64,000 nucleotides of DNA from Blastocladiella emersonii ATCC 22665 (lineage: Eukaryota; Fungi; Blastocladiomycota), in the NCBI GenBank assembly GCA_025594325.1, contig JANHCV010000003.1:744001-808000 (forward strand), in the 5' to 3' direction. Below the pieces are notes generated by a model. It made no database searches. It saw nothing but the letters and a program-made list of their open reading frames with translations, and was not told the DNA's origin. The position numbers and the translations under genes were made by a program. Of the stretch, positions 1,933-60,105 are shown one piece after another (the stretch's first letter is position 1; each line of letters opens with the position of its first letter).

Positions 1933-2789
1933 AGTGTGTGTGTGTGTGCGTGTGTATGTGTGCGTATTCGAGACGCCGAGGTGATCAGAGAGCCGCGCCA
2001 TGAGAGTGAGAGTTTGTAGCGGTAGTCCGGCGGGTGCAATTCAGCGAGTCGCTGCGCGGTGGGAGACTCAAGTCGATGCGGTCTGGCAAAACAGGCCAGT
2101 CGTCCGAGGCAAAAAGATTGTCTCCAGTTCAAAAACACGTGGCGGAAGCGACGCACGCGTGCGAGACATCTCTGCCCAACGGATACGTGTTTCATATTCT
2201 TGCGTGGTCCCGAATTAACGCGGGGAACCTTGGCGTCCTGAGCTCTAGAAGAGAGCATTTCATGTTCCCCCACGTATCAAGCCGGACCAGCGGCGGGGAG
2301 ACGGGACGGGAGACGCGCTGCGCCACACACGTGTTCCATCAGGTTCTGGCTCGCTCCTCACGGCCCGGCGCCACGCAGCGCTCATACAGCCGCGTGCCGG
2401 TACCATGAACGAAGGCGACGCTATGTGCGCATGAAGTCGAACGGGAGCTCGCTGGCCCAACAGCGCGCTCAAGCGAGCTCGATTGAAGCAACGCGAACAC
2501 AAACGCGACTGAGGGCCAAGGACTAGCGTAAGACAGTTCCCTCGGTGCAACCGCCCGTTCAGCCCGGTCCTTCGCCGATCGTGAGCCCGTGTACCGTCTG
2601 CTCAGTTTCGGCGGTTCACGGCTTACGTCGAGGGACTCGCCGCTCAGGTTGCGGCGGACGACTGCAGGGTGCAGCGGCCACCTCGGATCACATCCCGTCC
2701 GCCACCAGAACACCATATGCTACATGGGTTTCCTTCGCGCGTGTAAAGACCGAGTGGAGAAAGGCACACGAGCCAGGCGCTCCTGCAGT

Positions 2790-5401
2790 CAGAGGGCGGC
2801 ATCGAAGTGGGAGACGGCAAGCCCTACTAGGCTCGTGACCGCGGGTCAACGTGGCGCGTGAAAGCGACGCGTCGGCGGCGCCGCCTGCGCGGCCACTTCA
2901 CCACTCCTCTCCTCGCAGCCGGCAACGTGCGGACCACGGTCGCCTCGATGAAACTCTCACTTTATGAATAATACACGACCTCTTGCGATACATGATACAC
3001 TACTCCTTGTACGGCCCGTAGTGGTGAATGGATCGGAGCTGCGCCGACACGATGATCCCATCCTTGGCGAGGTCGAGCTCGGCCTGTGGGCCGACGCTCT
3101 TCGGCTTGTTCTTGCACTGGCGCTTACTGCCGTGCTCCTCCCGCTGGCGCCCCGCGTCGATACCGAGCTCCATTGGCTCGACGCTGGCCATGCGCTTCGC
3201 CGTTGAGCTCTTGGCGCCGGGCCCGTTGGGCCGCATCGCCATGGTGGCGCGCCGTATGATCTCGTTGAGGGACCGCTCCGCCACGAAGAAGTTGGGCCGG
3301 ATCGGCGCACCGTCCTTTGTCTTGACCGGACCCCGCCATGTCGGCCGGTCCTCGTCGTATCCCGCGACGGACAGCTCGTGCACGTTGTCCTCGTCGTCGG
3401 ATCCCTCTTCTCCTCCGCGCGCGCGTACCGCCGGTCCGGACACTGCAGGGCCAGTCGCGGCCGAGGATGCCGCTGCCGCTACCGCCGTGGACGCCGCGTG
3501 CGCTTTTGCGCGCTTGGCTTCGCGCCGGTTCGTGTAGCTCGCGCGGCGACTCTGCCCGGTCGTCATGAAGCCGAGCTCCTCGATCGTCAGCAGGTTCTGG
3601 CGCTCGAGCTCGTCGTACTTGGCCATCATCCGCACAATCTCGGTGGCCATGCTCAGCTTGAGCCCGCGGCCGTCGCGGTTGCCGATGGCCTTGATTAGCG
3701 AGAAAAAGCACTCGACGATGTTGGTGCTGAATGCGCGCAGGATGGCCCAGAGCGGCTTGTTCTCGTCGACCTCGTCGTGGGCTAGCTTGACGAGGAACTC
3801 GACGGCGAGGACGAGCATCATCAGGGCGATGCCCGTCTCGAAGTTGAGCCCGTTGGACAGGTCGTTGCGCCGTTTATTGTACGCGACGGAGAACATGCGC
3901 TCGGCCAGCGACTTGAAGAGCCACTCGCGCACGGGCACGAGGAGCTCGCGCATCTGCTTGAGCGCGAGGTCTGGATCGTCGTGGACGTCGTACAGCGACG
4001 TGATCGCCGTGGCCGCACGCTCGTACTCGCCGACTGCCGCGGGGCCGACCAGGGCCGCGTACTCGTGGAGCGCGGCGATGACGTCGGGATCGAGCATACG
4101 CATCGCCTCCCGCTCGTTCTGCTTGTCGCGCTTCTCCCAGCGCACGTGGAAGGGCCCGCCCGGGTTCGCGATCCCGAGACGGCGGAGCGGACTCGATTCG
4201 ACGTCGAGCTGTGCGAGCACGCTCGGATCGGCCGTACGCCGCGCCTCGGCCGAGATCACGGGCACGGGCGCCTGCGCGCGCTTCGTCGTCTTCTTGTCGC
4301 TGCACTTGGACTCGTGCACCTGCGTCACGGAGCGCTTGAGGGCGGGGGAATAGTCCACGATCGGAATGAAGTCGCGCGCGTTGGGACCGCTCGAGTGCCC
4401 CCAGTAGCCGCCCTTCCAGGTCTCGGCTCCGTTGCGCGCGACAATGTCCATGATGCCGTCGGCGAGCAGCTCAATCAGGGACTCGCGCACGGGGACCAGG
4501 GCCTTGAGCGTCGCGGGGACGCCGTTCTCCATCTTGGTTTTTCCATTGCCCGGCACCTTGAGGGCGGCAAGCGCTTGAGCGAGCACGCGCTTCTTGACCA
4601 TGGCGCAGTCGGTCAGCGGCTGCTGCAGGTACCCGCCGGCTCGAAGCGCTTCTTCGATGGCGGCCTCGGACTCGAAGGTGCGCTTGCCGAACTCGGCGGC
4701 CGGGTCGATCGCGTTGGCGGGGACAGAAACTACGGCGGGGACTGTCGCGCAGGGTGCAGGGTCCGGGTTCAGGCGCCCACCTTCAGCGAGCGGGTGCAGC
4801 ATCGCTAGCTTCGCCGACGCGAGGTTGGGCCCAGCCAGCACCATGCAGCGCATGATCTCCCAGGAAAGGTCGACCGTTGCGCAGGGAGTGGTCGGTTCCA
4901 TGACGCCGAGCGCATTCGGCCCGTCCGTGATCGCGGTGATGATGGCCGCCGTGCCCTTGGGCAGCGTGACGTTGCTCGGCAAGACGCGCAGCGGGGGCTC
5001 GCCCTTTATCAGGCTCTCTCACCACCCCACCGCTTCAGCTCACGCTCTTTCGTCGCCACACGTCGAGACTCCCTCAAGATGCACCTGATCTGGTTGCTCG
5101 AAAGACTCGGGACGGCGTAGTGCAAGCAGCAGGGGGGTTTATATGATGTACAGGATACTCCGTCACAACACGCGGATCGCCGCCGCTACTTGACCACCAC
5201 GCCGGAACCAGCCGCCACCACGCCTCGTCATGGATTCGGCAGCGAGGAGAAGGGAATGCAGGCGGCAGCGGCGGGAGTGGCGCGTCGCGGCGGCTCGCGG
5301 TGAGCGGTGAGCGCGCCGACGCGTCGCTTTCACGCGCCACGTTGACCCGCGGTCACGAGCCTAGTGGGGCTTGCCGTCTCCCACTTCGATGCCGCCCTCT
5401 G
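2790..5401 (-). mobile_element. TIR DNA transposon copy 1 (2612 bp; 88-bp TIRs; 9-bp TSD TCCTGCAGT), P-element-like
   Basis: TIRs beginning CAGAGGGCGGCATCGAAGTGGGAG at 2790..2877 and 5314..5401 (one mismatch at 5366). TCCTGCAGT flanks both ends (2781..2789 and 5402..5410). Same length as, and near-identical to, 52036..54647. Confidence 0.95.
3000..4982 (-). CDS. Putative DDE transposase, P-element-like (copy 1; no ATG, 5' end uncertain)
   Basis: Inside the TIR element. Motifs AITDG, IVDYSPALK (DxxH-position), EKRDKQNEREAMRMLDPDVIAAL and FSTNIVECFFSLIK parallel P-superfamily transposase motifs. Confidence 0.7.
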   Translation of the reverse strand: MPSNVTLPKGTAAIITAITDGPNALGVMEPTTPCATVDLSWEIMRCMVLAGPNLASAKLAMLHPLAEGGRLNPDPAPCATVPAVVSVPANAIDPAAEFGKRTFESEAAIEEALRAGGYLQQPLTDCAMVKKRVLAQALAALKVPGNGKTKMENGVPATLKALVPVRESLIELLADGIMDIVARNGAETWKGGYWGHSSGPNARDFIPIVDYSPALKRSVTQVHESKCSDKKTTKRAQAPVPVISAEARRTADPSVLAQLDVESSPLRRLGIANPGGPFHVRWEKRDKQNEREAMRMLDPDVIAALHEYAALVGPAAVGEYERAATAITSLYDVHDDPDLALKQMRELLVPVREWLFKSLAERMFSVAYNKRRNDLSNGLNFETGIALMMLVLAVEFLVKLAHDEVDENKPLWAILRAFSTNIVECFFSLIKAIGNRDGRGLKLSMATEIVRMMAKYDELERQNLLTIEELGFMTTGQSRRASYTNRREAKRAKAHAASTAVAAAASSAATGPAVSGPAVRARGGEEGSDDEDNVHELSVAGYDEDRPTWRGPVKTKDGAPIRPNFFVAERSLNEIIRRATMAMRPNGPGAKSSTAKRMASVEPMELGIDAGRQREEHGSKRQCKNKPKSVGPQAELDLAKDGIIVSAQLRSIHHYGPYKE

Positions 5402-7075
5402 TCCTGCAGTCAGCCCGCTGCACGACGCGCCCGGCTCCCTGCCCTCCCCCCGCGCGTCTTCGCGCAGGGTGAGGAGAGCGACGCATGTTCAGGGACAAAG
5501 AGCATTGCAGTAGGTAGCAGGAACGTCATGGCGGATCCGTTTTGTCCACTCTCACATCATAGCAAGCATCCCATTTACGTGACACGCACGATTGCTCATC
5601 TGCGCGTGTCTGTTGGGGAGGAGACGCTCTCGGCCGTTGAGCGATTCAACTTGTTTCCGCAAACGGAGTTCTTCCGACAAGTAACTGCGCAAAGAGCAGC
5701 GTCACAGAATGAAGGTCCGCGTGCGAAGAACGGCCGCGCGGTTGCCGCGAGCAGAAGCGCGAGCATGTGCCGGGGCTCTGCCAGCTCGCAGCGAGCCGGG
5801 TGAAACCCCGGGGTCACTGGCGCGGGCTGAAACAAGCGCGTGACTGTGGCGCAACGCGAACTCCTTCAATGGCGGGGCGTGGGAACGCGACGCGTGCTCC
5901 GTGCAACGTGGAGGGGGTTGGCCCAACGGCAGATCTCCGATCTAGGTGGGGGACGCAGTGTAGGCATTTTGGGTTCGGGTTCGGGTTCGGATGAAATATC
6001 ACGGTTTGAGCGCAGATCGCGCATCCAAGAGGAAATTTGCTATCGACCACCTTTGCGTGGCCCTCATGGGGCCCGATTGTTGGGCGCGACTCGTCTCGCG
6101 TCTCACGTTCGCTTCCCGCCGCCGACACGCTCACACCGCGCGTAATCGGGCGCACACGAAGTGTCTCAACGCAGTCACATGATTGATTGACGTGTCTCGC
6201 ACTCGATCGACTTGCATGGCTTCCTCTAAACGGTTTGGCGGTTTGCAGAGCTCGCCGCTCATACAACTTCTTCGCTCGGAACGGAAAACCTGTGAACCTG
6301 ACGGTGCGCAAAATTCGTGCAAGGAGGCCCGTCGCGAGGGGTCCCATCACAAGGCGAGATACGTTGCAAATTGCGACAGTTCACTTACCCTCGAAAATCG
6401 GTGGTCCTATTTTTGAGGGTAGCGAGCACCATCGAGGGTCGCCGCGGGACTGCGACGGCCGTGCCGTTGCCGCTCACGACAGTGATTGGTGATGAGGGTG
6501 GGTAAAATGTTCCGCGGTGGCTGTTAGAGGTGAAACGGATCAATAGTATCCTATTATGCGCAAGCCCGTAGGATTTGGTCAGGTAGCGGAGGAAATTAGG
6601 CAAGCTCCTGTACAGCCGCGCACTTGAGTGGTCGCGGGGGTCAATGGCCCAAATCAACCCTGTGATCATGGACGGCGAGCGGGCGCTTGAGAAGGCGCTC
6701 GGGAGCTCAGATCACGGACTGATTTCAAATTCAGCAGACTGCCGAATGTACTGATTTTACTGTCCAAGTGCGCAGATTCATGGAGATGCGGCTCACCTCG
6801 ATGATACTACACGTACGGCGGACGAGGGCTGAGTAAAGCCAGGGCGGGCAAGTTGATGGAACATATAATCCCATGTAGTGGAGACTGTACTATTTGTGAT
6901 CATCTTCAAGTTTGCTTGGACGACAACAAACGCATACAGTCAGAGTGAAGCGAAATAGTTGCCGCGTGCCGTCACAACACCCGCCGACGATGAGTGGCTT
7001 GGTCGAGTCGTTGCCCGCGCTCGGCCTCCCGACCACCCGCGCTCTCTCTCTCCACGGCTGCTGCTGTGAAAATAC

Positions 7076-48733: not shown

Positions 48734-49110
48734 TCATGAGTGTAAGTCGGCAATGAACACCTTTTCAGTTGCACACACTTTTCTGATTCCGGCTCGCATC
48801 CTCGGGAAGAATGCTCGCGAGATAGACGCGTTACCCGCGTCCAAGTTGACCACGTTGCGCAGCGCGTGCACCTCCTGGCGCATCAGCGAGCGCTTGCCGA
48901 CCTTGAACTCACCCACGGGCGTAAGCACGCTGACGTGCAGGTTGCGCGTGATCGCGAGGTCGATGAAGCGTCGTTGTAGGCAGACAGCATCGTCGTCGCC
49001 TCGTTAGGTCGATAATCAACGCCGCAGCCGTTCATCTTCATGATCCCGCAGAGCGCACAGTGCACGGGCGACGCCAACGGCAACGCGCGCAACGTCCGCG
49101 TTGTTGTCGG
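48734..49110 (-). pseudogene. Frameshifted gene remnant of unknown family
   Basis: GC3-biased stretch RRFIDLAITRNLHVSVLTPVGEFKVGKRSLMRQEVHALRNVVNLDAG follows a frame change from the 48883..49128 ORF; no family recognised. Confidence 0.3.
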
Positions 49111-49114
49111 CAGC

Positions 49115-49884
49115 CAGCGTCGCCTCATTATATTGAGGAACAGCGCCGCCTTGTTGAATAGATGATCAGCGTCGCCTTGTCGCGTTGATGATCATCGTCG
49201 CCTTGTCGCGTTGATGATCATCGTCGCCTTGTCGCGTTGATGATCATCGTCGCCTTGTTGAGTTGAAGTTCAGCGCCGCCTTGTTGAGTTGGTGATCAGC
49301 GTCGCCTCGTTGCGTCGATGATCAGGTTTGCCTTGTTGGGTTGATAACCAGCGTCGCCTTGTTGCGTAGATGACCAGCGTCGCCTCGTTGCATCCATGAC
49401 CAGCGTTGCCTTGTTGTGCTGGCGAGCAGCGTCGCCTTGCTGCGTTGATGTCCAGCGTCGCCTCGTTCCGTGAATGTCTAGCGTCGCCTCGTTACGTCAA
49501 TGTTCAGCGCCATCTCGTTACTTCAATGTTCAGCGTCGCCTCCTTGCGTTGATGACCAGCGTTGCCTCGTTAACTTGCGGATCAGCGTTACCTCGTTGCG
49601 TTGATAGTCAGCGTCGCCTCCTTACGTCAATGTTCAGCGTCGCCTCGTTACGTCAATGTTCAGCGTCGCCTCGTTGGGTCGTGATCAGCGTCGCCTTGTT
49701 CCATCGATGACCAGCGTCGGCTCGTTGCATCGATGACCGGCGTCGGCTCGTTGCATTGATGACGAGCGTCGGCTTGTTGGATCGATGACCAGCGTCGCCT
49801 CATTAAGTTGAAGTTCAGCGTCGCCTCGTTGCGTCAATGACCAGCGTCGCCTCTTGCGTTGATCATCAGCGTCGCCTTGCCGCG
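49115..49884. repeat. Tandem array of ~30 units of 26 bp, consensus CAGCGTCGCCTYGTTGCGTTGATGAY
   Basis: Units start at 49115, 49141, 49167 ... 49661, 49686 ... 49842, 49867. Two units are 25 bp. The first ~15 nt are conserved and the last ~11 variable. Confidence 0.95.
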
Positions 49885-50489
49885 CAGCACTAATTGGAGC
49901 CAAGATGAGGATTGAGTGCTGCGCTTGAGAGTCGACAAACAAACGAGTTGATTTAGCTCAGACTACGCTGAAGTCGTCATAGCGAAAGTATTGCGTTCCT
50001 GTCGAGTTTCTGCCCCAGCATATGGTTGCTCATCTCCATCGCGACACGATCAAGGCAAGGAGCAGGGGCTGCGACTCAACCCAGCCGCGCTGCTGCTGCT
50101 GTTGCCGCATAACATGCTGCGCAGAGCGACAGTGACAAGGTAACACGTAAGGTGAACCACCGCCTTGGCTCAGCTGCAAAATTAACTTTGTAAGGAAGCT
50201 AAATGAGGTACAGTCGCCAACTTGGCGCGGATTCGGCTGAAGTCGCACATCAACCAAGAAACGTCATTGACACATGAAGTAGCAACAACAGAGTACATAT
50301 TTGTTGCGGGTTAACCTTGATTCAGCGAGGGCGCGCAAGGGAGAAAGGGCGAGGGGACGCGTTCAGCCACCCACGTGGCATGTATCAGCCCGATGAGGCA
50401 AGCCCAAATGTGACAAGTAACGCCAGACCCGGTGGCGGAGCAGGTGGAGGTACGGTTGCAGATGCGGTAGGCGGAGGCGCAGAACCAGA

Positions 50490-51210: not shown

Positions 51211-51952
51211 CTACTGCGCCGAGTGGCAATCCCAGCACACGAGCTGCTGGCCGTAGTAGGTGTACCTACAGCGCGAGCGCGAGCGCGAGCGTCAGTCCAC
51301 GTCCACCGTCGCACGCAGTAACGAGGAGGGAGCCGTACTCGTTGATGTTGCATTGGACACAACACGGCCGCTCGCACGACTCACACGCGTCGAGGCACCC
51401 GTCGCAGAACGCCTTGTCGCACACGCCGCACTTGGTCCCGGCCGGTCCGGCCACGGGCTGGTTGCAGTGAGCGCACGGTGCAGGAGGTGGTGGTGCCGGC
51501 GGATCCACGGCCATGGCCTCGTCGACGCCGCCCGCTGCCGCCGTTGGTGTTGCGGCGGCCTCGCGCCGCGCGCCGCGGAACAGCTTCTCGAGCGTTCGCG
51601 CCTGCGCCTCCTGCTCCGTGACGCGCCGCGGGCGCGCGTCGCGGACGATCTTGCGGAGGACCGGGTTGACGAGACCAGCGTCGGACGCCGCTGCCTCACC
51701 CGCCTGGTCCGCGGGGACGCCAAACCCGCCGCTCCCGTCGTCGTACTGGTGGCGCTGCCGCTTGCGCGGGTTCCAGTAGAGTGTCTGCATCATGGCTGGG
51801 TCGTCGGTGGCTGCTGCTGTCTGGCTGTCGTGATCTGCTGGATGAGGAGCGAGAGTGTGTGATGGTGTTGGTGCAGCCGGCACGGCGCGGCCGGTCTGGT
51901 GGTGGTGTGCGGGCAGCGCGCCGTGCATTGGTCGCCATGCAGCGTGGTTCAT
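51211..51952 (-). CDS. SIVA-like C-terminal zinc-finger protein (intron 51266..51338)
   Basis: Spliced C-terminus CAHC...KCGVCDKAFCDGCLDACESCERPCCVQCNINE|YTYYGQQLVCWDCHSAQ* has the Cys spacing of the Siva B-box-like/zinc-finger region. Confidence 0.7.
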
Positions 51953-52035
51953 TGCGGATTATGCGGGCGGTGGCCGAGATTCATGCAAGCTTATCGTCGT
52001 TGAGAGGGAGCGCGACCATGCGAGGGGCTCGCGCC

Positions 52036-54647
52036 CAGAGGGCGGCATCGAAGTGGGAGACGGCAAGCCCTACTAGGCTCGTGACCGCGGGTCAACGTGG
52101 CGCGTGAAAGCGACGCGTCGGCGCGCTCACCGCTCACCGCGAGCCGCCGCGACGCGCCACTCCCGCCGCTGCCGCCTGCATTCCCTTCTCCTCGCTGCCG
52201 AATCCATGACGAGGCGTGGTGGCGGCTGGTTCCGGCGTGGTGGTCAAGTAGCGGCGGCGATCCGCGTGTTGTGACGGAGTATCCTGTACATCATATAAAC
52301 CCCCCTGCTGCTTGCACTACGCCGTCCCGAGTCTTTCGAGCAACCAGATCAGGTGCATCTTGAGGGAGTCTCGACGTGTGGCGACGAAAGAGCGTGAGCT
52401 GAAGCGGTGGGGTGGTGAGAGAGCCTGATAAAGGGCGAGCCCCCGCTGCGCGTCTTGCCGAGCAACGTCACGCTGCCCAAGGGCACGGCGGCCATCATCA
52501 CCGCGATCACGGACGGGCCGAATGCGCTCGGCGTCATGGAACCGACCACTCCCTGCGCAACGGTCGACCTTTCCTGGGAGATCATGCGCTGCATGGTGCT
52601 GGCTGGGCCCAACCTCGCGTCGGCGAAGCTAGCGATGCTGCACCCGCTCGCTGAAGGTGGGCGCCTGAACCCGGACCCTGCACCCTGCGCGACAGTCCCC
52701 GCCGTAGTTTCTGTCCCCGCCAACGCGATCGACCCGGCCGCCGAGTTCGGCAAGCGCACCTTCGAGTCCGAGGCCGCCATCGAAGAAGCGCTTCGAGCCG
52801 GCGGGTACCTGCAGCAGCCGCTGACCGACTGCGCCATGGTCAAGAAGCGCGTGCTCGCTCAAGCGCTTGCCGCCCTCAAGGTGCCGGGCAATGGAAAAAC
52901 CAAGATGGAGAACGGCGTCCCCGCGACGCTCAAGGCCCTGGTCCCCGTGCGCGAGTCCCTGATTGAGCTGCTCGCCGACGGCATCATGGACATTGTCGCG
53001 CGCAACGGAGCCGAGACCTGGAAGGGCGGCTACTGGGGGCACTCGAGCGGTCCCAACGCGCGCGACTTCATTCCGATCGTGGACTATTCCCCCGCCCTCA
53101 AGCGCTCCGTGACGCAGGTGCACGAGTCCAAGTGCAGCGACAAGAAGACGACGAAGCGCGCGCAGGCGCCCGTGCCCGTGATCTCGGCCGAGGCGCGGCG
53201 TACGGCCGATCCGAGCGTGCTCGCACAGCTCGACGTCGAATCGAGTCCGCTCCGCCGTCTCGGGATCGCGAACCCGGGCGGGCCCTTCCACGTGCGCTGG
53301 GAGAAGCGCGACAAGCAGAACGAGCGGGAGGCGATGCGTATGCTCGATCCCGACGTCATCGCCGCGCTCCACGAGTACGCGGCCCTGGTCGGCCCCGCGG
53401 CAGTCGGCGAGTACGAGCGTGCGGCCACGGCGATCACGTCGCTGTACGACGTCCACGACGATCCAGACCTCGCGCTCAAGCAGATGCGCGAGCTCCTCGT
53501 GCCCGTGCGCGAGTGGCTCTTCAAGTCGCTGGCCGAGCGCATGTTCTCCGTCGCGTACAATAAACGGCGCAACGACCTGTCCAACGGGCTCAACTTCGAG
53601 ACGGGCATCGCCCTGATGATGCTCGTCCTCGCCGTCGAGTTCCTCGTCAAGCTAGCCCACGACGAGGTCGACGAGAACAAGCCGCTCTGGGCCATCCTGC
53701 GCGCATTCAGCACCAACATCGTCGAGTGCTTTTTCTCGCTAATCAAGGCCATCGGCAACCGCGACGGCCGCGGGCTCAAGCTGAGCATGGCCACCGAGAT
53801 TGTGCGGATGATGGCCAAGTACGACGAGCTCGAGCGCCAGAACCTGCTGACGATCGAGGAGCTCGGCTTCATGACGACCGGGCAGAGTCGCCGCGCGAGC
53901 TACACGAACCGGCGCGAAGCCAAGCGCGCAAAAGCGCACGCGGCGTCCACGGCGGTAGCGGCAGCGGCATCCTCGGCCGCGACTGGCCCTGCAGTGTCCG
54001 GACCGGCGGTACGCGCGCGCGGAGGAGAAGAGGGATCCGACGACGAGGACAACGTGCACGAGCTGTCCGTCGCGGGATACGACGAGGACCGGCCGACATG
54101 GCGGGGTCCGGTCAAGACAAAGGACGGTGCGCCGATCCGGCCCAACTTCTTCGTGGCGGAGCGGTCCCTCAACGAGATCATACGGCGCGCCACCATGGCG
54201 ATGCGGCCCAACGGGCCCGGCGCCAAGAGCTCAACGGCGAAGCGCATGGCCAGCGTCGAGCCAATGGAGCTCGGTATCGACGCGGGGCGCCAGCGGGAGG
54301 AGCACGGCAGTAAGCGCCAGTGCAAGAACAAGCCGAAGAGCGTCGGCCCACAGGCCGAGCTCGACCTCGCCAAGGATGGGATCATCGTGTCGGCGCAGCT
54401 CCGATCCATTCACCACTACGGGCCGTACAAGGAGTAGTGTATCATGTATCGCAAGAGGTCGTGTATTATTCATAAAGTGAGAGTTTCATCGAGGCGACCG
54501 TGGTCCGCACGTTGCCGGCTGCGAGGAGAGGAGTGGTGAAGTGGCCGCGCAGGCGGCGCCGCCGACGCGTCGCTTTCACGCGCCACGTTGACCCGCGGTC
54601 ACGAGCCTAGTAGGGCTTGCCGTCTCCCACTTCGATGCCGCCCTCTG
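52036..54647 (+). mobile_element. TIR DNA transposon copy 2 (2612 bp; 88-bp TIRs; 9-bp TSD GCTCGCGCC), P-element-like
   Basis: TIRs at 52036..52123 and 54560..54647. GCTCGCGCC at 52027..52035 and 54648..54656. Inverted relative to copy 1. Confidence 0.95.
52455..54437 (+). CDS. Putative DDE transposase, P-element-like (copy 2)
   Basis: The 660-aa translation is identical to 3000..4982. Confidence 0.7.
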   Translation: MPSNVTLPKGTAAIITAITDGPNALGVMEPTTPCATVDLSWEIMRCMVLAGPNLASAKLAMLHPLAEGGRLNPDPAPCATVPAVVSVPANAIDPAAEFGKRTFESEAAIEEALRAGGYLQQPLTDCAMVKKRVLAQALAALKVPGNGKTKMENGVPATLKALVPVRESLIELLADGIMDIVARNGAETWKGGYWGHSSGPNARDFIPIVDYSPALKRSVTQVHESKCSDKKTTKRAQAPVPVISAEARRTADPSVLAQLDVESSPLRRLGIANPGGPFHVRWEKRDKQNEREAMRMLDPDVIAALHEYAALVGPAAVGEYERAATAITSLYDVHDDPDLALKQMRELLVPVREWLFKSLAERMFSVAYNKRRNDLSNGLNFETGIALMMLVLAVEFLVKLAHDEVDENKPLWAILRAFSTNIVECFFSLIKAIGNRDGRGLKLSMATEIVRMMAKYDELERQNLLTIEELGFMTTGQSRRASYTNRREAKRAKAHAASTAVAAAASSAATGPAVSGPAVRARGGEEGSDDEDNVHELSVAGYDEDRPTWRGPVKTKDGAPIRPNFFVAERSLNEIIRRATMAMRPNGPGAKSSTAKRMASVEPMELGIDAGRQREEHGSKRQCKNKPKSVGPQAELDLAKDGIIVSAQLRSIHHYGPYKE

Positions 54648-54671
54648 GCTCGCGCCGCTCTCCGAGTCACT

Positions 54672-57181: not shown

Positions 57182-60105
57182 ATGCTGGACCACCTCTACG
57201 GGAAGCCGTCGACCACCTGGAAGCGCTTCGAGGCGCTCCTGGTCGCGCTCGTCTCGTACGCTCGCCTCGTCGCTGCACGCCCGAGTGCCTCTTGCGCTGA
57301 CCACCTCCATCCAGGCTCAAGATCCTCAAGGCCTACCACAACCGCCCCGCGCCCGGCGGCCGCTTCGTCCGCGGCCTCGACGCCAAGCTCAAGCGCTTCG
57401 CGCCGTGGCAGATTGTCCTCGGCACCCTCACGTCCGGCTACCTGCTCTCCAAGTTCAGTCTCTTCACCTTCATGAACTGTACGCTTCCTGCTGTACCGGT
57501 TTCGGCCAGCCTGATCTGACTCTGCGACGCGACCGCGTGTAGCCACGGAACCCTATGCTCGCTACGTACGATGGTCACCGACAGACCGCTCGCTAGTCGC
57601 GCTCACACGACACCCGCTCTGTAGTACAATCGCAACTTCTACCGCGCGACGTGGATCATGGTCGCGCTCGACGCCGGCTTCTGGACCGCCATGAACATCA
57701 AGCCCAAGATCCTGCGCGACGTGTGCAGCATCCTGTTCACGCTCTTCTACCTCGTCTTCGCCAACCGCGCCGACTACAAGGTGCGCCGCCTGCGCGCCTC
57801 GCCGACCCTCGACATGATGCGGCTGTCGTGGGAGAAGCAGCGGCACCCGCTGTTCCGCCTCGCGTCGCGCGCCATGCAACCCAAAATCACCTGGCGCGGG
57901 AAGCGCGTCGAGCTGCCACGGCCGCCGACCGCGTACGGGTACAACCCGGCGGATCCCAACACGACGCGCACGGTGCTGTCGCTCTTCTTCGCGGGCGCCG
58001 TGGCCGACCTCGCGCACGTCCGCAACGTGATCCTGCACTTCCCCGGCGGCGGGTTTGTGTGCATGGACCCGTCGATCCACGAGGACTACCTCGTCGAGTG
58101 GGCGCACCTGGCGCCGCACACGCTCGTCGTCGCCGTCGACTACGCCAAGGCCCCCGAGTACCCGTACCCGTACGCGCACGAGGAGCTGTTCGAGCTGTAC
58201 AAGCTGATCCGCGAGACCAACGGCGAGTGTCTCGGGCTTGCCGGGTGGACCGCCGATTTCGCCGTCACCACCGTCACCAACGGCCGCGCCGCCCACACCA
58301 CGGAGCGCCGCCGGTGCGCGCCCATCGTGATCGCCATGTCCGGCGACTCGGCCGGCGGCAACCTCGCGGCCGGCGTCGTGACCCGGTGCATCGAGGCCAA
58401 GGTCCCGCTCCCCGACTCGCTCGTGCTCATCTACCCGCACCTCGACATCGACATGGCGTGTTGGCTCTCGCCGCAGACCACGGAGCTGCTCCGCGTCGAG
58501 TCGGCCAAGCACGTCAACGCCCACGTCGACATTCACCGCACCGCGAGCGTCGGCCACCTCAGCCAGCTGCACCTCAGCGCCCTTGCGACCACGACGGCCG
58601 CGGCCGCGGCGGCCGCCGTCTCGGCGCCGACCAGCCCGCGCGGGCTCGGCCCCGCGGGCACGTCGTCGGGTGTCCTCGACCACTCGGCGCCCATGTCGTC
58701 GCTCTCCATCAACACCAATATGGACGCGTCGGGCTCGTCGTCGTCGGGCGGCGGCCTGCAGCGCAAGCGCAGCTTCTTCGAGATGGCCTCGTCCAAGCTG
58801 TCGGCGCTGCGCACGCAGAAGCCGCACACCGTGTTCGACGACTACGGCAACCCGACTTCGGCGCACCCGCCGTCGTCGGCCATCGACGCCACGCCGACGG
58901 GCACCGGTACCGCGACGCCGCCGCCGCCCAAGTCGCCGTACCGCGGTCCCTCGGCCACGTACCCGCTGCCTCCGTCGACGGGCGGTCCCGCGGCGCTCGC
59001 GCGGCACGGCGGGGCGACGGCGGGCTCGACGCTGGCACTGACGTCGCACATGGCCAACTTCAACGACCGGGTGCTGACGCCCGAGACGATGCGGGCGCTG
59101 GCGCTCCTGTACCTCGGCCCGTCGCCGATCCCGATCGACCTCGAGCGCGACTACTACCTGTCGCCCGTCCGCACCCCCGACGCGATCCTCGCGCAGTTCC
59201 CCAAGACGTACCTCGTGTGCGGCGAAAAGGACCCGCTCGTCGACGACACCATCACCATGGCGGGCCGGATCCGCGAGGCCAAGCAGCGCGCGTGGCACCG
59301 GAGTCTCGGGCGGCCCCGGCCCCGCGACACGGATGTTGCGGAGGTCGTGATCCTCGAGGGCGTCTCCCACGCGGTGCTCCAGATGATGGCGTTCCTCCCC
59401 GAGGCCAAGGACACGTGCCGCCTGATCCACGGGTGGTTCAACGAGACGTTCCACCCGGCCGGCGAGCCCGCGGTCGCTAAGATGGCGGCCGCGGCCGCGC
59501 AGCAGCAGGCGCGGTCGACCACGAGCGCTACCATGGGCTCGCGCACCACGTCGCGGTCCAAGTTCACGATCGGCGCCGACCACGAGGGCCTGCACAGCCT
59601 CGTCGGCAGCAATGGGTCGGCCGGCTCGTCCTTCGCCGCCGACGACGCGTCGCCGCAGCCCACGGTCGTCCACCGCACGCAGCAGCCGCGCAGCCGGTCC
59701 GCGTCGCCCGTGCGCCCGTCGTCGTCGTCATCCAACACGCCGACGCCGCGCACGGCTACCGCCACCTCGGCGTCGCAGCGGCCCAAGCTCGGGTCGGCAC
59801 ACGTCGACGAGGAGGTGAGCCTGCTGACGGGCAGCGAGGCGGACGATGATGACGATGACGACGACTACCTCGAGTTCCGCGACCAGGCGCACGTCGACCA
59901 GGCGCGGCTCCTGCAGCGGCGCACCATGCACCTGAGCCACGGGCTTTTCGGGTCCCAGGAGCAGGCGGATAAGGCGTTCCGGCAGAAGATTGGGACGGGT
60001 ACGCCGACCAAGCGCGCGGCGTCGACGACGGGGACGCCGAGCGGGAAGGCGGTGGCGCCGGTCGTCACGGTGCGCACGGCGAGTCCCGCGCGCAAGGCGG
60101 AGTGA
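57182..60105 (+). CDS. Hormone-sensitive-lipase-like alpha/beta hydrolase (fungal type; 3 introns near 5' end)
   Basis: HFPGGGF, VDYAKAPEYPYP, GDSAGGNL, CGEKDPLVDD, GVSHA; N-terminal membrane segment FYRATWIMVALDAGFWTAM. Confidence 0.9.

Follow-up and report, generated by a model that had tools for sequence, protein, structure and literature searches.

A very divergent, probably P/THAP9-related DNA transposon family with 9-bp target-site duplications in Blastocladiella emersonii

Introduction

Which kind of transposase moves a DNA transposon that ends in 88-bp terminal inverted repeats (TIRs), is flanked by 9-bp target-site duplications (TSDs) and has no recognisable relative outside the genome that carries it? 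Two nearly identical copies of such an element raise this question in a 64,000-nt stretch of the genome of Blastocladiella emersonii ATCC 22665, a zoosporic fungus (assembly GCA_025594325.1; contig JANHCV010000003.1, positions 744,001 to 808,000 of the forward strand). Throughout, the window denotes this whole stretch, numbered from its first letter; the loci L001 to L006 carry their own numbering. The original prediction for this locus described a recently active P-element-like transposon with unusual ends and footprint, and raised the possibility of an undescribed P-related lineage in zoosporic fungi.

We consider it probable (roughly 70%) that the window copies are non-autonomous deletion derivatives of a ~4.6-kb cut-and-paste transposon, with a DDE (Asp-Asp-Glu) transposase of ~1,300 aa that belongs, as a very divergent member, to the P-element/THAP9 superfamily. 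Here, we describe the ends and footprint of the element, its relatives within the genome, the deletion that gave rise to the window copies, and the evidence on the superfamily of its transposase, which we weigh against the alternatives.

Two recent insertions with 9-bp target-site duplications

The features that delimit the two window copies are as follows.

2790-5401, minus strand (the transposase-sense strand): copy 1, a non-autonomous element of 2612 bp, delimited by its TIR pair and TSD; the same copy as L003 4129-6740
2781-2789: left TSD of copy 1, TCCTGCAGT
5402-5410: right TSD of copy 1, TCCTGCAGT
2790-2877, plus strand: 88-bp TIR of copy 1, the 3′ end in transposase sense, with terminus CAGAGGGCGGCATC
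5314-5401, minus strand: 88-bp TIR of copy 1, the 5′ end in transposase sense
52036-54647, plus strand: copy 2, 2612 bp, with its open reading frame (ORF) at 52455-54437, plus strand
52027-52035: left TSD of copy 2, GCTCGCGCC
54648-54656: right TSD of copy 2, GCTCGCGCC
52036-52123 and 54560-54647: 88-bp TIRs of copy 2

The predicted coordinates and TIR length proved exact: the arms of copy 1, of 88 nt each, are complementary at 99% of positions and those of copy 2 at 100%. Both copies begin with CAG and end with CTG, and the window contains exactly four occurrences of the 28-nt terminal sequence, with none expected. The copies lie in opposite orientation and differ by a single mismatch in 2612 bp, at window position 5366, inside the 5′ TIR of copy 1.

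Each copy is flanked by a perfect 9-mer, and these 9-mers differ in sequence between the copies. Taken alone, copy 2 could also be read as having a 7-bp TSD and one additional TIR base, a reading that is ruled out by the flanking bases of copy 1 (T...T). For an 8-bp TSD, the extra end base would have to differ between copies that are otherwise identical. Only a length of 9 bp thus agrees with both copies, as had been proposed. The flanks of the two copies, whose insertions are 46.6 kb apart, are unrelated, so that they represent two separate insertions and no segmental duplication. With a divergence of 1 nt, the 2.6-kb form has been mobilised at least twice, very recently, which bears out the claim of recent activity. 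No empty-site joint was seen in the read contigs from one sample, probably the assembly's own.

A small family of three lineages within one genome

A protein search with the 660-aa ORF of the window copies returned three matches (P0001, P0002 and P0003), all from B. emersonii ATCC 22665 and residing at loci L001 to L003. Searched exhaustively with HMMER, 1.84 billion cluster representatives yielded four matches, again all from B. emersonii, and no relative outside this species was found in word-index searches (with the ORF and with a three-lineage profile), viral-contig searches or metagenome searches. The members fall into three lineages, all within the B. emersonii genome.

Lineage A: the window copies, L002 and L001
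L001, 4949-9584: lineage A, 4636-bp element with the same TIRs as the window copies
L002, 3453-6062: lineage A, third short copy of 2610 bp, 97.8% identical, with a mutated GAG terminus
L004, 5227-8934: lineage B, deletion derivative of 3708 bp with ~138-bp TIRs and terminus CAGGGGCCGGCATC
L005: lineage B, fragment
L006, 3493-8096: lineage C, 4604-bp element with terminus CAGGGGGGCCGAC

Lineage B shares 38-41% identity with lineage A, and lineage C 24-27%, while the terminal 14 bp are nearly identical between lineages A and B. TIRs range from 88 to 139 bp over the family. L001 is decayed: its frame is broken at several points, 54 bp have been inserted, and a 16-bp deletion has taken out the motif around the candidate catalytic Glu. 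In L002, a 1-bp insertion and a 3-bp deletion disrupt the ORF. L006 carries a 993-aa ORF and an upstream 404-aa ORF that are connected by a single frameshift near 4909-4915. Joined across this frameshift, they form a near-intact protein of about 1,300 aa.

Tabulating the TSDs of the further copies extended the result from the window. L006 is flanked by a perfect 9-bp TSD (ATGAACTGG), and at L004 (GGTGCGGGC) an ambiguity between 7 and 9 bp is settled at 9 because the CAG...CTG termini are conserved. All four insertions with intact flanks (copies 1 and 2, L004 and L006) thus have 9-bp TSDs, with no 8-bp case, and this holds down to ~25% identity between lineages.

The family is small, as judged from contig depth in one sample, which amounts to about 3-4 internal copies and TIRs worth about 5 elements and so points to some 4-5 copies overall, and from the loose ends at the terminus, which, among those listed, belong to the L001 and L002 flanks.

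Close inside its 5′ end, the full-length L001 element contains a 134-aa ORF (L001:5158-5562, plus strand) with a lineage B counterpart at L005:6031-6387 (27% identity over 121 aa). It matches no Pfam family and is probably an N-terminal exon or a second transposon ORF.

The window copies are internally deleted

The interior of copy 1 contains the following features.

3000-4982, minus strand: 660-aa ORF, the C-terminal ~60% of the transposase, comprising the expanded insertion domain, a predicted catalytic-Glu helix and the C-terminal domain
5019-5229, minus strand: 211-bp filler at the internal-deletion junction, with no match in L001 (blastn)
3699-3725, minus strand: TNIVECFFS, motif of the candidate catalytic Glu (E424), conserved as STNxVEGYFSxxK in all three lineages
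4116-4139, minus strand: WEKRDKQN motif of the insertion domain, conserved in all three lineages
4920-4934, minus strand: AITDG, whose Asp is not conserved (Ser in lineage B, Ala in lineage C)

Aligned in transposase sense to the 4636-bp L001 element, positions 1-172 of the short element correspond to full-length positions 1-172, positions 384-568 to 2370-2554, and positions 553-2612 to 2593-4636, at ~96% identity. About 2.2 kb is gone from the window copies, and with it the coding sequence for the N-terminal region and for the first half of the RNase H fold; the 211-bp filler matches neither L001 nor any other sequence compared. In the alignment to P0003, 430 residues of that protein lie upstream of the point at which the window ORF starts. 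This start is ~30 residues past the position of a DxxH motif (described below), and the window ORF is therefore predicted to be without the first two catalytic Asp residues. The window copies derive, by internal deletion, from a ~4.6-kb element of the L001 type and are non-autonomous.

The ratio of nonsynonymous to synonymous substitution rates (dN/dS) of the window ORF is 0.65 against L002 and 0.40 against L001, values that fit a transposase that was formerly under selection and then decayed neutrally. The 660-aa ORF is a remnant, which is still open because the copies are young.

All of the motifs that had been pointed out in this ORF are present: AITDG at aa 17-21, the segment VKKRVLAQALAALKVPGNGK at 129-148, the DKQN-type motif WEKRDKQNEREAMRML at 282-297 and TNIVECFFS at 420-428. 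Two of the labels attached to them did not hold. The Asp of AITDG, read as the first one visible, is not a catalytic (DDE) residue: its counterpart in P0003 (D448) falls inside the insertion domain on either reading of the catalytic triad, and the position is not an Asp in the other lineages. The segment at 129-148 had been called SAP-like, but aa 1-374 of the window ORF give no match to the SAP domain (PF02037) at E≤10, and the segment is unconserved in lineages B and C.

Evidence for a P/THAP9-type transposase

A profile search covering the P/THAP9, Mutator-like element (MULE) and KDZ families, as had been suggested for this ORF, matched a single transposase family in any family member, the P-type TNP-like_RNaseH_N (PF21787; 137 profile positions, curated cut-off 24.6 bits). 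This cut-off is passed by a domain-sized piece of L006 (5674-6180), which corresponds to the N-terminal RNase H half, with 26.2 bits (E 1.1e-5). On the whole L006 ORF, the match (aa 314-381) reaches 22.6 bits (E 1.4e-4), below the cut-off, and on lineage A (P0003:300-470) 15.2 bits (E 0.028). The matches in lineages C and A have a common profile span, positions 66-128. Neither the window ORF nor P0001-P0005 gave a whole-protein Pfam match, and hAT, MULE, KDZ and other transposase families gave no Pfam match to family members at E≤10.

The candidate catalytic residues of L006 are spaced as D254-(74)-D328-(45)-D373GAH376-(450)-E826. This resembles the signature of the P transposase DmTNP, D230-(73)-D303-(36)-D339xxH-(192)-E531, in which a [C/D](2)H motif comes right after beta5 and residues 339-528 form the insertion domain (PMC8230255). 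On our putative triad, the 137-position profile would span from beta1 to just beyond beta5 of L006. An insertion of ~450 aa occupies the position expected for the GTP-binding domain (between beta5 and alpha4), and the candidate Glu motif STNxVEGYFSxxK follows in all three lineages. At the DxxH position, L001 has N399/S402 and lineage B has DGAF. TFDGA was considered as the site of the second catalytic Asp and was replaced by DxxH on the basis of spacing and the geometry of the Pfam profile.

Neighbours in the ESM atlas point in the same direction. Those of the window ORF are TNP-like clusters (score 0.86) that carry TNP-like_GBD, the GTP-binding domain (GBD), and those of the L006 ORF are TNP-like as well (score 0.93, 180 shared features), all named ones belonging to one family set. 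From these sequence comparisons, we regard the enzyme family as most probably P/THAP9-related, a link of moderate strength. Of the proposal of a P-related lineage in zoosporic fungi, the placement in B. emersonii and the probable relation to P/THAP9 stand; the lineage is very divergent, yet it is no new kind of element.

Several observations weigh against this assignment. Of the three TNP-like Pfam domains, a single one gives a match, and the cut-off is passed only by a domain-sized piece of one lineage. The GTP-binding insertion domain (PF21788) and RNaseH_C (PF21789) have no match at E≤10, the latter despite the conserved Glu motif, and neither THAP (PF05485) nor the P-type helix-turn-helix (HTH) domain (PF12017) matches the N-terminal ORFs of L001 and L006 at the same threshold; the THAP finger may not be universal in the P superfamily. 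The region that matches PF21787 is deleted from the window copies, so that this evidence comes from their full-length relatives, and the candidate first Asp falls beyond the stretch covered by the Pfam local match and has no conserved counterpart in the decayed L001. Searches of PDB sequences with phmmer and with a profile returned no P transposase, only a chance match to a restriction endonuclease (E 0.01) and a hypothetical protein (E 0.52). The AlphaFold2 models are unusable, with mean predicted local distance difference test (pLDDT) scores of 29.8 for the window ORF (4 sequences) and 31.7 for the L006 ORF (5 sequences), and the N-terminal 462 aa of L001 (L001:5830-7215) had no usable neighbour in the ESM atlas. 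As for mobility, L001 carries the 16-bp deletion in the Glu motif and an Asn in place of the DxxH Asp; no intact autonomous lineage A copy is among the copies recovered; and L001 and L002 have no recognisable TSD.

Alternative affiliations

The family could instead represent a separate, undescribed DDE superfamily, in which a very large insertion domain splits the RNase H fold; P, hAT and Kolobok would then be kin in fold alone, and the 9-bp TSD would be a hallmark of the new superfamily. In favour of this view, 1.84 billion cluster representatives held no relative outside B. emersonii, the word-index, metagenome and viral searches were blank, PF21788, PF21789, PF12017 and THAP gave no match, the insertion domain is large (~450 aa versus ~190 aa in DmTNP), and all four insertions have 9-bp TSDs. 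We consider this unlikely, because the sole significant family-level signal is TNP-like_RNaseH_N, in two lineages and at matching profile positions, the spacing of D-D-DxxH resembles that of P, every named ESM neighbour is TNP-like, and the P superfamily already includes 9-bp TSDs. A possible, if doubtful, variant places the three lineages as a deep clade sister to the P superfamily, or as an adjoining new superfamily, characterised by an obligate 9-bp stagger, no THAP domain and an insertion domain of more than double the usual size, and still active, the last point resting on the two copies that are 1 nt apart in 2612.

The ends and footprint also invite comparison with two well-known superfamilies. 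MULEs typically generate 9-bp TSDs and have long TIRs, a combination that the family shares with its 9-bp TSDs and 88-139-bp TIRs, and the conserved STNxVE resembles what we take to be the MULE Glu motif, TNxxES. Still, MULE, Transposase_mut, DBD_Tnp_Mut and SWIM match no family member at E≤10, ~450-500 aa separate the Glu from the conserved Asp residues upstream, compared with about 100 in MULEs, and no MULE cluster appears among the ESM neighbours; a MULE is very unlikely. A hAT element is very unlikely too. Its appeal lies in the CAGAG(G) termini, which resemble those of hobo, Hermes and Tol2, in the large insertion domain that hAT transposases have ahead of their E..FS motif, and in VE.FFS...R..L after the Glu, which resembles what is presumably the hAT C-terminal motif and serves as a lead only. 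The TSDs are 9 bp and not 8 bp at all four insertions, however, Dimer_Tnp_hAT (PF05699), BED and other hAT Pfam families have no match at E≤10, the ESM neighbours include no hAT cluster, and the Pfam signal points to TNP-like_RNaseH_N.

How the 2.6-kb form may have arisen and moved

Taking the transposase to be a divergent P/THAP9 member, the movement of the window copies can be pictured as follows. Internally deleted, non-autonomous P elements are mobilised in trans, and a full-length transposase supplied in trans would likewise bind the 88-bp TIRs with their conserved terminus (CAGRGGSCGGCATC), excise the element and join it to target DNA cut with a 9-bp stagger, resulting in a 9-bp TSD. The candidate sources of this transposase are an unannotated or unassembled lineage A master copy, or cross-mobilisation by a related lineage. 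The terminal 14 bp of lineages A and B are nearly the same, and L006 is nearly intact.

The 2.6-kb form itself would have arisen by loss of about 2.2 kb and gain of the 211-bp filler through interrupted gap repair. In P elements, interrupted gap repair leads to internal deletions with filler, and we propose it here because the 2.6-kb form has the same deletion-plus-filler structure. Local reinsertion is also known for P elements, and the presence of near-identical copies 46.6 kb apart would fit it.

Surroundings of the insertions

Copy 2 lies 84 bp upstream of the start of a 228-aa ORF (window 51266-51952, minus strand) with a weak, sub-threshold Siva-like Pfam match (E 3e-4), and ~3 kb from an ordinary host gene, an 815-aa ORF (window 57658-60105, plus strand) with an alpha/beta-hydrolase fold (Abhydrolase_3, E 2.5e-31). 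At L004, a 535-aa gene (L004:3544-5201, minus strand) with a Cas12f1-like_TNB domain (PF07282), Fanzor/TnpB-like, has its start codon 26 bp outside the left end of the element (5227). That copy 2 and L004 are both just upstream of gene starts could reflect a preference for 5′ regions or merely short intergenic spacers.

The L001 and L006 elements lie ~120 bp and ~70 bp, respectively, upstream of the start codons of paralogous DUF4470 genes (L001:4320-4871, minus strand; L006:7909-9729, plus strand; also L006:244-3355), the proteins of which start with MKQKKKT. These look like two independent insertions into similar promoter regions. As a rule for the family, an association with DUF4470 genes fails at the window copies.

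Two further repeats were noted in the window. A long tandem array of 26-bp repeats, with 60-82% identity between registers, occupies 49036-49888. Near copy 1, at 5446-5566, a core of ~50-60 bp (about 5513-5564) has a summed contig depth of ~35 times that of its flanks and many different loose ends. The window holds a single instance of this core, for which Rfam gave no match; the high depth may stem from a high-copy repeat of which the core is a piece, or from cross-matching contigs.

Significance

With 9-bp TSDs, long TIRs in the P superfamily and P elements in Allomyces all already published, the family is no new kind of element. What is distinctive is its extreme divergence (one of three TNP-like domains detectable), the absence of a detected THAP domain, an insertion domain ~2.3 times the usual length and a 9-bp TSD that does not vary among three old lineages. 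This DNA transposon family of an early-diverging fungus is well delimited and apparently still mobile, and its ends, its footprint, its deletion derivatives and a near-intact copy of the master type (L006) are all defined. It widens the sequence range of P-type transposases, with a 9-bp stagger kept among lineages that share only 25-40% identity. For annotation, the hypothetical proteins H9P43_003096, H9P43_000653, H9P43_006943, H9P43_003690, H9P43_006442 and H9P43_008664 are transposase remnants. Should the three lineages be a deep clade, they would offer a natural system for studying how the geometry of the insertion domain sets TSD length.

Comparison with known P-superfamily elements

Like the P element and THAP9 (DmTNP and hTHAP9), the B. 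emersonii family comprises cut-and-paste TIR elements, the N-terminal RNase H half of which matches PF21787 in the full-length relatives, with a putative triad of P-like D-D-DxxH spacing and a large predicted insertion between beta5 and the Glu helix. Unlike them, it has no detectable homology to the THAP finger, HTH, GBD or RNaseH_C, and its insertion domain is about 2.3 times longer. It also differs from the P element in its TSDs (9 bp at all four insertions versus a canonical 8 bp), its TIRs (88-139 bp versus 31 bp) and the length of its protein (~1,300 aa versus 751 aa).

Within the Blastocladiomycota, the P superfamily is already on record through P elements reported from the blastoclad Allomyces macrogynus (Yuan & Wessler 2011, as cited in PMC5751038). 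The exhaustive search of 1.84 billion cluster representatives matched no Allomyces protein at E≤0.001, and the B. emersonii family is therefore at best a distant relative of the Allomyces P elements as they are reported there.

The long TIRs had been regarded as unusual, but they have a precedent in Galileo, a P-superfamily element of Drosophila, which likewise has long TIRs and differs in having 7-bp (rarely 8-bp) TSDs and TIRs of hundreds to more than 1000 bp (PMC4168063). TIR length is therefore not diagnostic within the P superfamily.

The 9-bp TSD, also held to be unusual, has been published for two elements of the repleta group: the P element of D. buzzatii has 9-bp TSDs, and BuT5 of D. 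mojavensis has 9-bp TSDs in 13 of 17 copies and 8-bp TSDs in the other 4 (PMC3698922). These elements share with the B. emersonii family not only the 9-bp TSDs but also the presence of non-autonomous derivatives, which in the repleta group have an interior unrelated to that of the master copy; they differ in being insect elements of clearly P-like sequence, with 3-bp TIRs, mixed 8- and 9-bp TSDs and a THAP-binding site (PMC3698922). A 9-bp TSD thus lies outside the canonical 7-8 bp of P elements and within the published range of the superfamily (8-9 bp in repleta-group P/BuT5), and the B. emersonii family stands apart from its repleta-group counterparts by long TIRs and by TSDs of 9 bp only (n=4).

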